Part shown: piece after piece, positions 57,076-64,000 of the stretch
How positions within the stretch are numbered: the stretch's first letter is position 1
How the letters are laid out: each line of letters starts with the position of its first letter
Source: Polymyxa betae A26-41
Taxonomy: Eukaryota > Protista > Endomyxa: Phytomyxea
DNA: 64,000 nucleotides
NCBI GenBank assembly: GCA_003693705.1
Contig: RBZT01000435.1
Location: 248,001 to 312,000, forward strand
Direction of reading: 5' to 3'
The notes under the pieces: model-generated
The model's input: only the letters and a program-made list of their open reading frames with translations
Told to the model about the DNA's origin: nothing
The model's database searches: none
Program-made: the position numbers and the translations under genes

Positions 57076-58503
57076 TTATTCTTGATGCGCTTTTCCGACG
57101 AAATCGAACGATACTGGACCTTGCAGCATCCAGAACAGCAGACCTGAAACTATGCTGAAAGCGAATCTGGCGATCAGCGCCGCCAGTAAGCCGTGCGACA
57201 GAACGATGTTCCAGAACAGCGACGAAATTATCATCTGGCAAGGTTCCAGGAAGAAATCGGCGAACCGCCACGGCTTCAACGTCAACGTCGTCGGCAGACG
57301 AATCGTGGATAGCACGAGCGCTGTCAGAAGATCGGGACGACCGCTAAACGTACTGGCGTCTAACGACGTTGACGACAATTTCGACAGAATAGAGCTTATT
57401 ACAAATCTAAGCAGGCTGCCGAGGCTCCATAACAAGCTGATGTTGGATAATTGTCCATAGACAGTAAGGCAAGCGAGACCGGCAACGATCAGAATAGCGC
57501 GAAGAGAACAACGCTCTGAGACAACGCCAACAACAGCCGCGATCATGACAAAGCTGCCGACGTATTTTGTCATGGCCAGATCCAGAAGAGACAGAAGGAA
57601 TGCTAAAGCGAATTTAGTAGCAGATCGGTAAAAGCAAACAAGATTGCAATAAGGTGAACAAGTGCAAAAAAAACAACAGAAAAAAACAACAGAAAAAGCA
57701 TAATAGAAGACAGAAGAAGGATTACCAAGACAATTAACGCCCATCCAACGATGCAGAATTTCATCGAGCATGTCGGCGATGATCGACCTCCATAGAACGG
57801 TCAATGGCCCTGAACGTAAGATCGCTGCCGAATACGGATCGTTAACCAGCAGGCTGGGCGATCGTGGCAGTTGAAACAACAGCCGCAACATCGTTAGAGC
57901 GACGCACAATCCGACGGCGATCGCAACAACTTCCACGATGACCTTCATGGACATGGCCGTCGATAGCAACACCGGGAACAGCTTGGTCGGGAAGCCCAGC
58001 GTCCAGAACAGGAACGCCGACAGCAACAGATTCCGAACGAAACTCTTCACGTACTGCGCTGGCGTCGTGAACGTCGTCGCCGCCGACTTGGTCGCCGATT
58101 CGTCGTAGTACGCCCGCAGGCAGCGCGATTCGTCGACGAGCTTGGCGAGCCGGGGCCGGGGCCGCACCCACCGCCCGAACAGGTTCGCGTGACGAAGCGT
58201 CTCATAACAGACATCGAGCAGCGACAGATCATGGGCCGCCTTCAGCAGGCGCCGTTCCGGGTCCAGCTGCGACGTCCTCGTCCAGAGCGTGTCGAACTCG
58301 GCCGAGTCGCGGGCCGGTACGCCCTCCATCTGATGGTACAGCGCCAGGCAGTAGCGTTCGGCGTCGGCGTGGTCGGTGGGCGCGTACGCCAGCAAGGTCG
58401 CGACCGGAACCGGCGGGCCGGCGTCGTTCGCCAGCCAGGCGTCGGGCGTGGCAGCGGCGGCCGCCTCCGCCGCCGTACTGGCCTGCGGTTGTTGCGACGT
58501 CAT
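57076..58503 (-). CDS. Multi-pass membrane protein, possibly degenerate CPBP/CAAX-protease-like. Probable in-frame intron 57603-57725
   Basis: Many TM segments. IIADMLDEILHRW resembles EExxxR. The T-rich 123-nt segment is bounded by GT...AG. Confidence 0.7.
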   Translation of the reverse strand: MTSQQPQASTAAEAAAAATPDAWLANDAGPPVPVATLLAYAPTDHADAERYCLALYHQMEGVPARDSAEFDTLWTRTSQLDPERRLLKAAHDLSLLDVCYETLRHANLFGRWVRPRPRLAKLVDESRCLRAYYDESATKSAATTFTTPAQYVKSFVRNLLLSAFLFWTLGFPTKLFPVLLSTAMSMKVIVEVVAIAVGLCVALTMLRLLFQLPRSPSLLVNDPYSAAILRSGPLTVLWRSIIADMLDEILHRWMGVNCLGNPSSVFYYAFSVVFFCCFFCTCSPYCNLVCFYRSATKFALAFLLSLLDLAMTKYVGSFVMIAAVVGVVSERCSLRAILIVAGLACLTVYGQLSNISLLWSLGSLLRFVISSILSKLSSTSLDASTFSGRPDLLTALVLSTIRLPTTLTLKPWRFADFFLEPCQMIISSLFWNIVLSHGLLAALIARFAFSIVSGLLFWMLQGPVSFDFVGKAHQE

Positions 58504-58579: not shown

Positions 58580-59146
58580 ATGAAGAAGATCGAGGAGGAG
58601 CAGGTACGACGGCGAATGTTCGCCGAGGCCCGATTGAAATGCGACGCGACCATCAAGGTGTTTGCTGAATGTGCTAAAGGTGCGTTTTGGTTTTATCGAG
58701 AGACGGATTGTGGGTTCCGGCATGGTTTGAAACAGTTTAAGACCTGCAGAGTTTTCCAACAATTTCTGAACGATTGTTGGATCTCACAAAACAATCAAAT
58801 CGCTCTTTATATAGCTGGCCGTTATCATCAGCCCCATCGCTGCCCATTAATTGGAATTGCTTTAAAGACGATCTGATTTCTGTTCGTTGTTTTTAGTGCC
58901 AACTGTCAGAATCTATCAACGAACAGGCCATTGATATGTATAACAGGCAGGTCTGTGAGTGTGCTCTGGGCGTGTCGCGAACTCAACAAAAAGATGAACG
59001 CCTGTCTGCATCAGTAAGCCGCTGTTTTCGCACGTCCCGGTTCGTCTCAGATCGGCGCTCTCAGGTTCACCAACAGTGAATACTTCGAGCAATACAAACA
59101 GGATCGTCTGGCCACCAACAACGACTCAGCCATTCCATCTTCATAG
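58580..59146 (+). CDS. CMC1: Twin CX9C COX assembly protein, Cmc1 family, 3 exons
   Basis: ARLKCDATIKVFAECAK|GRSVSVLWACRELNKKMNACLHQ|FTN. Confidence 0.88.
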
Positions 59147-59275
59147 CATCGTAGATTTCGTCATAAACGTGCTTATTCACAAAGCCATTTTACGAGATCC
59201 CAGAACCAAAGATTTTTAGCCGATTTTTTTGTAACTTTGTGACGGGCTGTCTGAACGCGATGACAGATCGAAGTT

Positions 59276-60269
59276 ATGCTGCTTCGGGTTCATACGAACG
59301 ACGGTCGCACCGAGGACATCCACCTCGACGATGACGCGAAGATCACCGACCTGCGCCGCGCCATCGCCGATGCATTCGTCGTCGTCAGCGGCGCCGAACG
59401 CGCCCGCATCCGTATCCACGAACCCTTCCACGAACGCCTTCGTCGCCGCCTCAAACACAAGCCGCAACCCAGCCAGTCCGACGTCATCGTCTTGGACGAC
59501 GCGCGGGCCAGTACGGCGCTGGCCGCACTCGGCGTCCGCCATCAGTCGACGATCGTGGTGGAGAACTGCGACGAGATCTCATCTCGAGCGTTTTACAGCG
59601 TGATCAGGCGTCTGCGATCGCTGAAGGAGAGCGATGGCGGTGGTCGTCGTGGGAAGGCGGCCCTCGATCTGGTGCGGACGCTGATGCGAGATCGGATCCT
59701 GAACCCCGACAGGATCTCGGTCCCGGTCGACGCCGTCAAACCCGTCCTCGAAGGCGCCGATTGTTATGCGATTCTATCGCCGCTCGGCGTCGTCCTGAAG
59801 GGTGACCGATTCTTCCTTGATAACGTACGGTCCTATTATTCTGCTCGTTCGTCTCCTTTATTGATGTCGTTAGGTGACGTCTTGTATAGCCCGACAGGTT
59901 CTGTACTGTCTGTATGGGCGGCAGGAATGGGGTCGCATCGAGTCTGAGCAGCAGAAAGCTATACAAATAGCTGTCTCGGCGCCGCCTCCCAAACTGACCC
60001 CGACACCCACCACGAAACCGAAACCCGTCACCGATACCATGCCCGATTATTCGCAGCGTGCGTTCTACATGTTCGTGGCGGTGATCGTCGCCGGCATCGT
60101 ACTGGCCCAATGCGCCCGGCGGTATTCGGAAAGGTCGAATTCCGGATTCGCTCCGGATGGGGTTGCGATAAGAGATTCGCCAAGGCCGGTGGACCAGGAG
60201 AGTACCGATCAGGCAGCGGTATCGCCAGCAATCAAGATACCCGTTGATAGTCTACATAATGAGACTTGA
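59276..60269 (+). CDS. Ubiquitin-like domain + PUB-like region + C-terminal TM protein (intron 59825-59873)
   Basis: MLLRVHTNDGRTEDIHLDDDAKITDLRRAIA...LAALGVRHQSTIVVE fits a beta-grasp pattern. ALDLVRTLM..ILNP..ILSPLGV is PUB-like. TM is AFYMFVAVIVAGIVLA. Confidence 0.7.
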
Positions 60270-60896
60270 TAAACAGAATTTTGTCTCGAGGCAGAACTTC
60301 AGCTCGAGTCTGTTTTAATTAACGCCACTGTACCGAAGATTCTAGAGTTTTGAGTTGAAGCCTTTGACTGGCTGCTGATGGTTTGTTGAATGTAGGACTA
60401 AATCGCTTTTTGAGTGTTTGAGGGGTACCTGCCACGTGCAGGCACCCTCTCAAACGACGCGGTGACGAGACAACCTCATCAATTTCAGCCTTTCAGGTGA
60501 ATGAGCAACAGGCTGCGCCTTCTCAAAAAACTTTGAGTTTGAGTTTAAGCTGACTGCATTCAGAACGAAACTAAAACTCAAAAAGGCTTCGAAACTTCTC
60601 TAATGGAGTACTGCAGATATTTGATCCGATTCACAAAAGCTCTTTGTTTCTGAATTATGCCTCACTAAACATCAACACCAGCAATTAGCCGGAGAGCATG
60701 TCCGAGAATCGAACACGATTAGAAAACAAACGTATGTGCAAATAAACACGCCGGCCTGGAGCAAACAATCAAGCACCGATATGCGATGACTCTTTGTCTA
60801 TTGATGTTCGCAATCCCATAGAACGGGGCAGAATTACAGATCGAAAACTTAGCAACAGAACAGTAGAGATTAACCAGTTAATACAAAGGATGACAA

Positions 60897-62399
60897 TCAT
60901 GGCGTATTCGAAGGTCGAGGACAGTCGCAACGGGGCGAACAAAACCAATGTTCTTGTTTGCAGTATGGGCCAGGCCATTCCGATAGGCAGAAGTAGCTGT
61001 GCACAAGTTACAAACAGAAACAGACAGACAGCCGGAAAAAATTAATACTAAGGTAAAAGGTTAAAAACAACAAATAAAAAACAAGCAATATGATAGAATT
61101 CGTACCACCAGTGACGGCCACAACGTGTCCCGTCTGGATTTCTTCCAATGCATCCGTCTGTCCCATACCCAATATGATGACAGCCCTCCTAAACCAAAAG
61201 ATAAGCGCCGGTCAAGAAATTAATGGTTGAACATACATCGTAGAAGTGAGTAACCGGCGATCGACAGAATGGACAGGGTTTACTTCCAGGCGAAGGCCTC
61301 GTGTTTGACGACGCATTACAGGTGCATTCGGCGGCGGCTTGCAAGCAAGCTCGGCAGAATTGTCGCCGACATTCAGAGGCAGGACAGCGTAATAATCTGG
61401 AAGGCGGTAGTGGACCAACGATACCACATCCGCATCTGGGAAAAAGCGTCGAACAATGACTATTGGGAGCTCAGTTGGTACAGACCTTGGTAGAGGACAG
61501 AATATGCCACCGGACGTCAATGTAAGCGACAGTTCCGTGGCAAACAGCTTAAAACGCTGATACGATTCGACACCGGTAAGACGAAGAGTCTCGATGTGCA
61601 ACAAGGTCGAGCCGGTGCATCGCATTGGACCTTAAAACAATCACAACTGTGACGAAATATAGGTTTTGTCTCAAGAAGAGTAAGCAGAATAAAAAAGGAC
61701 ATCCAATTATAGAACGTACATTGGAGCGAGAATGAATCCGAATCTGAACTGCAGCGAGCCAGATCGCGATTATTTAAAGCAGACGAGACGAATGCGGTGA
61801 AACAGTCAAGGTCGATGCAATGACGACATGTAGCAAACTGAACAGCGACAGCCCGTGAAGGAATCAGGCTCAGACAGCAGCAGCAGCATGTCGTTGTGCT
61901 TTCCTGCTAAACCTTGAACATCTTTGGTTTGGACAACCAACAAAATGAAATGAGCGACAATCAGAATTGTTAAAAGGACCTCGAAAGAGCATAAAACCAG
62001 TTCCCTGTAAAGTGCTCATAAATATCCATACCACAAAAATGCAATCGATCTGAAGAGCGTCCTGGCCTCGACATCTTTGGCTTTCTGCACAAACGTAGTA
62101 GGAATCCTAGAAAGATATTTCAGACGACAGCCCAAAGAATCGAAAAGAGCATTCAGCCGGAACGAATATGAATCAATCAATTTATTACAAAACAGAAATC
62201 GGTTTACGATCTGGTCAAATCGCCGGTCGCAAGCAAAACAGGACCGGGAGTCGCTATCTACGGCATCGCTGCGGCAAAGCGGGCAGCGAACGCGAGCCTT
62301 GCCGCGACGAACGCCCAGCTGAGCGGCTGAAGGCTGAGCGCTACACGCAGCGTCATTGGCCGAGATATGGCACGAAGGGCACCGAACGGCCAATGACAT
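60897..62399 (-). CDS. PRKN: Parkin-like RBR E3 ubiquitin ligase (RING0-RING1-IBR-RING2), 7 exons, 326 aa
   Basis: Exons 62399-62208, 62106-62032, 61906-61720, 61630-61486, 61435-61237, 61188-61106 and 60996-60897 splice in phase at GT-AG. Motifs GKARVRC, RHCIDLDCF, FSLQCPMRC, LRLTGVESYQRF, GGIFCPLPRCG, KPCPFC..GCHH, WCYFCLSEW..C..EHWF. Confidence 0.88.
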
Positions 62400-62684
62400 C
62401 AATGAGAGCCTTGATAAAGGGCGCAACCACGCATCAATCTGAATGAGAGTAACATGAAGATGCCATCCTCTTAGTAGTTGCAATTAGCTAGATGCAACGA
62501 GCTGGTAGAAGGTCAAAGCATAGCATATTGAGTCGGCAACCAGACGATGGTCAGCGTTAGGGTCCCATTCATGCTTTTTCGATAAAATGGTCGTAATCGC
62601 AAACAGGAATAGTAAGCATAGAGTGGTAATTATAGAATTATCGATATATTAGAACTATTAATCAGAGCATGGAGCGAATCAGAG

Positions 62685-63299
62685 CTATACGAACTCAGTA
62701 GCAGTCTTATAAGAAGGTGGCGAATTCGATTTTTGATCTTTCGAGTACAATTTCTGCGAGTCGGGCATGTTAATCTTGACGATGTCGATTTTCTTGATTT
62801 TCTTCTCGTTCCCAGCCTCGATTGACCTTTGACTGCTTCGATCTCCCAGACTGGCCTTCTTTCCAGGTCCTTCGATCGTCTGCGTCTCGTAATGGTCGCA
62901 GACGGTGAGAATCGCCTGGATAGCAGTCCGCAAGATGAACGCCATGCCAGAAACGAAGACCCCAATTAGAGCAGCGCCATAATGTAGCATACCTCTGCCC
63001 TCATATGCAAGCAGCATTCCAATCAAGCCAACAATGAATACAGGAACGAGAGCAATGGTTAGACAGAAAGCTTGAAAGGCGCTGCTAGATAACGGTTGCG
63101 GTTTAGCATCTCTGGAAGTCCAGCTCTGGAAGCAAAACAGCACGAAAGCGATCGTCCAGACGCCAATAAGCTCAGGTTGGGCGTCAAAGCGGCACAAAGC
63201 GCCCGCTGTTGGACAAGAAACAGACTGCACTCCGATTATTGGCGGCAAAACAGCAACTGCTAAGCCAAGCAGGAACAAAACTAGTTTGGCGAAATGCAT
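62685..63299 (-). CDS. Uncharacterised ~4-TM membrane protein with C-terminal PPSY motif
   Basis: Intronless 204-aa ORF with hydrophobic helices and tail SPPSYKTA. Confidence 0.7.
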   Translation of the reverse strand: MHFAKLVLFLLGLAVAVLPPIIGVQSVSCPTAGALCRFDAQPELIGVWTIAFVLFCFQSWTSRDAKPQPLSSSAFQAFCLTIALVPVFIVGLIGMLLAYEGRGMLHYGAALIGVFVSGMAFILRTAIQAILTVCDHYETQTIEGPGKKASLGDRSSQRSIEAGNEKKIKKIDIVKINMPDSQKLYSKDQKSNSPPSYKTATEFV

Positions 63300-63605
63300 T
63301 TCGACACGATTTGGGTATTCTGCAACGGCGGCGCTGCCAAGGACGGGCCGATGATCAGACTATGAGACGAGCAGCGATTAATGGCAAGATGCGGCAACAT
63401 CTGTTCACGACGCCTTCGAACAATCGCGAACAGAAATGACCCAACAAGCTTCTCAAAAATGTTTTCTTCAGTCGATCGCCGCAGATTCCTATCTTTTCAG
63501 AAAGACAAAAACGGGTAAAATACGGAGAAAGCTTGAAAACTGAAAATGTTTGAAAGTCGAATCGTATTAATCAAATACATTTACTGAGAATAAATAAAGC
63601 GTTGC

Positions 63606-64000
63606 TTATTCTGACCTGCCTTCTTCGCCCTGCTCTTCATTGGCCATTTCCAATTTCATTTCAGAGGCGTTCGACTCACGATTCGCACGCTGAGCCATCG
63701 CACTGCAAATCGCTTCGTAAACAGGTAACAATGAAGTCGATGGTTCAGCCGAGAGGAATCGACATTCGCTAACATCATCTTCGTCGTCAACATCAAAATG
63801 AATAAGCAGCCACGGTCCCGGCAAGGTGTTGTCGCCATTAACCGATAAAGCGTGTAACTGAACTAAAGAAAAACTTTCGTCAAATACTTGCTTTTTAAAA
63901 ATCAAAAATGAGGCCGTGAATGGTCAAAGAAGCCAAACTTATGGTAATACAGGAAGCAACTATGGCCATGACGGAAAAAGCATGACGATCCTTACTGTAT
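63606..64000 (-). CDS. 3' part of a gene running off the window
   Basis: Terminal exon ORF 63606-63890, with intron-like sequence and a further exon upstream. Confidence 0.55.

Follow-up and report, generated by a model that had tools for sequence, protein, structure and literature searches.

A predicted Parkin-like ubiquitin ligase of the R0RBR type without Ubl and REP, encoded in a presumably non-animal genome

Introduction

Is there a Parkin-type ubiquitin ligase outside animals, and, if there is, which of the parts of Parkin does it have? Parkin (PRKN/PARK2) was described by Marin in 2010 as an animal-specific subfamily of the RBR ligases (PMC2904391), and PARK2 and PINK1 were both placed among the metazoan-specific genes (PMC3789837). 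Phytophthora sojae has neither PINK1 nor Parkin, and an E3 that is distinct from Parkin and has a similar function was suggested (PMC10912746). Our literature search found no report of a protist or other non-animal Parkin. In Parkin itself, three autoinhibitory devices are known: the Ubl, the Trp of the tether between BRcat and Rcat that docks on RING1, and RING0 (PMC3940038). The regulation of Parkin is seen as a set of such brakes, which PINK1 lifts.

The question is raised by a locus in a 64,000-nucleotide stretch of DNA (the window), which, unlike the known Parkin genes, belongs to an intron-bearing, 27-Mb genome with short introns, presumably that of a non-animal protist. A preliminary description of the locus had proposed a "minimal Parkin" with all four Parkin-type zinc domains and with neither Ubl nor REP. 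A natural Parkin-type core outside animals, with two of the three brakes gone and the phospho-ubiquitin pocket altered, would separate the ancestral parts of Parkin from the animal additions. It would give structural and enzymological studies a naturally occurring minimal Parkin as a comparison, and it would pose the question of Parkin-type, ubiquitin-dependent organelle quality control in protists. Here we report that the locus probably encodes a Parkin-like ligase of the R0RBR type without Ubl and REP in an intact, single-copy gene, and we propose a mechanism and a mode of regulation for it.

Results

Structure of the ligase gene

The gene model was built by reading the reverse complement and locating the exon boundaries. 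The ligase gene occupies 62399-60897 of the minus strand, where seven predicted exons with GT-AG borders encode a protein of 326 amino acids (981 nt including the TGA stop codon). Translation would start at 62399, with the first ATG that follows a stop in this frame. The six introns, all GT-AG, are 48-125 nt long. Seven exons had been proposed, and the number stands, with frame-consistent GT-AG introns and each exon colinear with the ortholog P0001; their description as "in-phase" does not, since the intron phases are 0,0,1,2,0,2 and thus not all 0. The features of the locus are as follows.

62400-62684, minus strand: upstream gap of 285 bp, bounded by the stop of the next ORF on the same strand
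62399-62208, minus strand: exon 1, residues 1-64; N-terminal Cys-rich domain (RING0 position), first part, with C7, C10, C19, C39, C42, C54 and C57, with GKARVRC at 62303-62283 (residues 33-39)
62106-62032, minus strand: exon 2, residues 65-89; N-terminal zinc domain, continued, with C70, C76 and C86
61906-61720, minus strand: exon 3, residues 90-151 and the first base of the C152 codon; RING1, ligands C97/C98, C100, C116, H118, C119, C124
61630-61486, minus strand: exon 4, residues 152-200; end of RING1 (C152, C156), helix with E165, R168 and Y175, and first IBR Cys (C196)
61435-61237, minus strand: exon 5, residues 200-266; IBR C201-C239, linker (61317-61276) and first CxxC of RING2 (C254, C257)
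61188-61106, minus strand: exon 6, residues 267-294; RING2 catalytic core EGCHH (residues 267-271, 61188-61174), with the C269 codon at 61182-61180, and H271, C279, C289, H292
60996-60897 (TGA), minus strand: exon 7, residues 294-326; end of RING2 (C294, C297, C306, H310), HWF at residues 310-312 (60950-60942), and tail with C313, C317, C319

The acceptor of exon 3 is a tandem NAGNAG site (tag/cag, 61909-61904, minus strand), and its alternative form would yield 325 amino acids. P0001 is one residue shorter at the junction of exons 2 and 3, and either of the two NAGNAG sites may serve.

An ortholog supports the exon structure and serves as a proxy

Exon 1 alone, run with HMMER against the full set of 1.84 billion representative proteins, found the protein P0001 (329 aa; UniParc UPI0006B2D44A, via MetaClust) at E 2e-10. 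Local pairwise alignment of each exon showed that the joined exons and P0001 are strictly colinear and identical at 181 of 309 positions (59%). The identities were 32/60 for exon 1 (P0001 residues 3-62), 13/24 for exon 2 (residues 67-90), 31/47 for exon 4 and 22/27 for exon 6. Apart from one residue at the junction of exons 2 and 3, the exon junctions were gapless relative to P0001, and the three split codons of the gene encode C, R and C, identical to the residues of P0001 at those places. The window protein and P0001 have 37 Cys and 6 His in common. P0001 begins two residues ahead of the equivalent Met, with Pro-Gly, and its 5' end may therefore be incomplete.

When P0001 was used in a six-frame search of the 27.09-Mb genome (1001 contigs), only the ligase locus was matched (E 7e-20 to 1e-8), with six of the seven exons detected and none of the 25-residue exon 2; the gene is thus taken to be single-copy. 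By its sequence, the ligase locus is an intact gene, present once in the genome. Word-indexed homolog searches for relatives returned P0001 itself and nothing else, and a search for encoding contigs together with a metagenome scan yielded no further relative. Single window exons gave no Pfam match above the cut-off, and their PDB searches were mostly insignificant, the exons being short. The family statistics below were computed on P0001 or on single exons, and reach the window protein by orthology.

RING1, IBR and RING2 are of the Parkin type

RING1, IBR and RING2 follow one another in the RBR order, and all of their ligands are kept relative to P0001. The Parkin RING1 family PF17978 (zf-RING_14), the profile against which a HMMER comparison had been suggested, matched P0001 at 35.1 bits, and at 40.1 bits when residues 92-200 were searched alone, over a curated cut-off of 26.6 bits. 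The match spanned P0001 residues 95-181 and covered almost the entire profile; in the window, exons 3 and 4 each carry a part of this domain. A generic IBR family matched residues 194-233 at 19-20 bits, and comparison of P0001 with Pfam matched no IBR_1, IBR_2, Ariadne or Rcat_RNF216 family. Five further RBR loci of the genome (on contigs C344, C604, C777, C503 and C621) served as controls for PF17978. None exceeded 15.1 bits, and three of the five matched generic IBR families instead.

Among all PDB sequences, the only RBR proteins matched by P0001 were Parkins, including the IBR of human Parkin (2jmo, E 6.7e-9) and Pediculus Parkin (5caw, E 1.5e-8 over residues 83-313). With the 47 residues of window exon 4 alone, 24 of the 24 matched PDB sequences were Parkins (E 0.005-0.1). 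The top structural neighbours of the ESM Atlas model of P0001 were two Parkin clusters (TM 0.51 and 0.50, residues 33/34-311), below which the RNF144 clusters were ranked. The Atlas search by language-model features retrieved generic IBR clusters only and no Parkin, and an AF2 model of P0001 made without an alignment had a pLDDT of 35.5. These comparisons support the assignment of the window protein as a predicted RBR ligase with a Parkin-type RING1-IBR-RING2, whose nearest known relatives are the animal Parkins.

The N-terminal domain is RING0-like in position and motif

Residues 1-89 contain ten conserved Cys (7, 10, 19, 39, 42, 54, 57, 70, 76 and 86) and no conserved His. The motif GKARVRC, which had been compared with RING0 of Parkin, is present at residues 33-39. 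Homology to RING0 did not follow from the suggested HMMER comparison with the Parkin RING0 family (PF17976), in which all matches were sub-threshold: 12.8 bits for exon 1 (E 0.15) and 9.4 bits for P0001 residues 1-95 (E 1.7), against a curated cut-off of 25 bits. Both of these weak matches share the register GKxRVxCxxC, at profile positions of about 12-33.

As a lead, the spacing C39-x2-C42-x27-C70-x5-C76-x9-C86 resembles that of human Parkin, C166-x2-C169-x26-C196-x4-C201-x10-C212. RING0 of Parkin has two zinc sites, Cys4 and Cys3His. The ligand His215 of Parkin has no counterpart in the window protein, where the fourth ligand of the first RING0 zinc site, a His in Parkin, is missing. Searched against the PDB, a profile of both N-terminal domains matched no Parkin; the zinc ribbon of eL37 ranked first (E 0.016). 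Since RING0 has a double NZF-like fold (PMC3940038), matches to zinc ribbons are compatible with a RING0. We therefore describe the N-terminal domain as RING0-like by position and motif, its homology being unproven. The proposal of four Parkin-type zinc domains thus stands for RING1, IBR and RING2, and is tentative for RING0. The same division applies to the term minimal Parkin, which fits the Parkin-type RBR core and the absence of Ubl and REP, and is tentative for RING0, where the match is sub-threshold.

An unrelated protein of 666 aa (P0002), with about nine tandem zinc-ribbon repeats of about 36 residues (KMCVEC...FGLERGKP.THC..CK), matched exon 1 at GK..(V/H).C..C; the motif is thus also found in non-Parkin zinc ribbons.

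Ubl and REP are absent

The 285-bp upstream gap has stops in all three frames and encodes no ubiquitin-like domain, and no ORF of 90 aa or more within the approximately 5.6 kb upstream of the ligase gene is Ubl-like. PF00240 had 32 matches in the genome and none on the 330-kb contig that carries the ligase gene (C720). The lack of a Ubl that had been read from the upstream sequence was thus upheld, also by the start of P0001 at the equivalent Met. The linker between IBR and RING2 (N240-P253) is 14 residues long and contains no Trp, and that of P0001 is about 15 residues long, likewise without Trp. The linker had been estimated at about 12 aa, and the conclusion drawn from it, that the REP is missing, agrees with these lengths. 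The sequences of the window protein and its ortholog support the absence of both Ubl and REP.

Catalytic and phospho-ubiquitin-binding residues

The catalytic Cys-x-His is C269-H270-H271, within EGCHH; it was correctly recognised in the preliminary description, is kept in P0001 and aligns to RING2 of Pediculus Parkin. H310-W311-F312, likewise noted before, aligned in HMMER to the terminal HWF of Parkin and is also kept in P0001. Human Parkin residues C431, H433 and E444 form the catalytic triad, and through Trp462 and Phe463 at the end of Rcat the catalytic Cys is buried against RING0 (PMC3940038). E444 corresponds to H292. The substitution had been reported as a change from Parkin, and it is present; it is not distinctive, because Pediculus Parkin has His at the same position. 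RING2 holds two insertions of about five residues each, where one insertion had been mentioned. A conserved Cys-rich tail, residues 313-326 (60941-60900, minus strand), follows HWF, with C313, C317 and C319 and then PRP.

HMMER alignments to Parkin placed E165 at human H302, R168 at R305 and Y175 at Y312, in agreement with the earlier by-eye reading of these three positions. K161 and R163 were equated with K34 and R36, and K151 with P8, as had been proposed (the first two kept, the third changed), from an alignment of the RING0 region that is statistically insignificant. The change of K211 to Val was not reproduced, K211 aligning to D85 given C212 = C86. The phospho-ubiquitin pocket is thus altered, with Glu at the H302 position, R305 kept and, only tentatively, Pro at the K151 position.

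The 37 conserved Cys, including the surplus C19, C54 and C57 and those of RING1 and the tail, suggest more zinc sites than the eight of Parkin.

Discussion

Comparison with Parkin and other RBR ligases

The window protein shares with Parkin the order zinc domain, RING1, IBR and RING2, a RING1 of the PF17978 type, an IBR that opens with C-x4-C-x14-C, the Cys-x-His, the HWF at the end of RING2, and the R305 and Y312 positions. Unlike Parkin, it has no N-terminal Ubl and no Ubl-RING0 linker, and its Trp-free tether has 14 residues compared with about 40-45 in Parkin. It also differs by the Glu in place of H302, by the ligand spacing of RING1 (C-x-H-C-x4-C), by an N-terminal domain that has ten conserved Cys, no His ligand and an insertion of about 17 residues, and by the two RING2 insertions and the conserved C-x3-C-x-C tail past HWF.

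In lacking both the Ubl and the Trp that blocks the E2 site, the window protein resembles the engineered delta-Ubl "R0RBR" core and the tether-Trp mutant. Those are constructs of animal Parkin and were reported to be more active (PMC3940038), whereas the state seen in the window is natural and is conserved between two species. With Ariadne/HHARI, RNF144, ARA54/RNF14 and RNF216 the window protein shares the RING1-IBR-RING2 supradomain and, as we infer, the thioester mechanism; unlike them, it carries none of the accessory domains (Ariadne, RWD, TM or others).

Proposed mechanism and relation to PINK1

By analogy with RBR enzymology, RING1 would bind E2~ubiquitin, and ubiquitin would pass to a thioester on C269 and then to a substrate lysine. 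The absence of Ubl and REP should leave the E2 site accessible. Of the Parkin brakes, only the one in which the N-terminal domain occludes RING2 could remain, and its persistence is suggested by the retention of Trp-Phe. Because the Ubl and the tether Trp are missing, the enzyme is probably less tightly locked than Parkin, or differently regulated. The extra tail (C313, C317, C319) and the surplus N-terminal Cys might, speculatively, form additional zinc sites that staple these parts together.

Activation by PINK1-made phospho-ubiquitin appears unlikely, because Glu occupies the His302 position and Pro the tentative Lys151 position. Two PINK1 motifs were looked for in a six-frame genome search. 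DFGCC gave 11 matches, none of them in a kinase context, and HRD[LIM]K-x-DN gave no match; both are weak negatives. Independence from PINK1 is plausible.

Alternative readings of the locus

The likeness to Parkin could stem from shared RBR ancestry and chance motifs, the protein belonging to some other or lineage-specific RBR subfamily and its N-terminus being an unrelated zinc ribbon. Such a reading would account for an N-terminal profile that matches eL37 and other zinc ribbons and no Parkin, for the PF17976 score under the cut-off, for the generic IBR clusters among the Atlas feature neighbours, and for the low identity to Parkins. It is at odds with the PF17978 score, which was over the cut-off here and under it in the other RBRs of the genome, with PDB matches that include no non-Parkin RBR though structures of HHARI, HOIP, RNF216 and further RBRs exist, and with the terminal HWF and the IBR spacing, which are those of Parkin. 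We consider this reading unlikely.

Acquisition of an animal Parkin gene by horizontal transfer, without the Ubl exon or exons and with later divergence, strikes us as quite improbable. The gene has six spliceosomal introns, its identity to the ortholog is no more than 59%, a value that implies a long residence in the lineage, and the similarity to animal Parkin is low (about 37 bits). The treatment of Parkin as animal-specific (PMC2904391; PMC3789837) would speak for a transfer, as would the failure of our searches to return another non-animal relative, but those searches were of very limited reach. That the locus is silent or decaying and has no present function we regard as extremely unlikely: the reading frame is intact through seven exons, every splice site is canonical, and the ortholog shares 37 Cys and 6 His. 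No reads covered 58800-64000 in four RNA runs labelled with the same species, which would fit decay, but these runs were themselves without any reads of the organism, and none of the runs recorded as RNA contains the stretch. The reading as a Parkin-like R0RBR-type ligase is thus the one that we hold to be probable.

Neighbouring genes

A convergent neighbour lies tail-to-tail with the ligase gene, about 630 bp downstream of it.

59276-59947, plus strand: ORF of the convergent neighbour, followed by a later frame with a predicted TM segment, up to 60269

The N-terminus of the neighbour (about 95 residues) gave a weak Pfam match to OTU1_UBXL (E 0.008) and a CLU_N-like Atlas neighbour (0.78), and PF00240 did not detect it. 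Its AF2 model was of low confidence (pLDDT 52.5), and the Foldseek matches of the model were nearly all of the ubiquitin fold (UBX, ISG15, ubiquitin and NEDD8; E 2e-3 to 3e-2). The modelled N-terminus is thus probably a beta-grasp protein. That the two genes are adjacent does not by itself establish a link between the neighbour and the ligase, and we give such a link little credence. It would be part of a broader and, in our view, very unlikely scenario, in which the window protein is a surviving pre-animal Parkin, its zinc domain and RBR core predating Ubl and REP, which works free of PINK1 and phospho-ubiquitin, with the membrane-anchored, Ubl-like neighbour recruiting or releasing it in trans (a "split Parkin").

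Several further features were observed in the genome. The upstream same-strand ORF (62685-63299, minus strand; 204 aa) contains about four hydrophobic segments and matches no Pfam family. Two of the other RBR genes, at G000:C777:21085-21996 and G000:C621:121190-122053, are paralogous and have the RING2 motif CP(E/D)CH..IT; the copy on C621 has TM-like hydrophobic segments at its end and in this resembles RNF144. The RBR locus on C344 has a strong IBR and is possibly of the Ariadne type. In the window, the 500-bp block at 58000-58499 has a GC content of 0.69, compared with 0.41-0.59 in the surrounding 6 kb.
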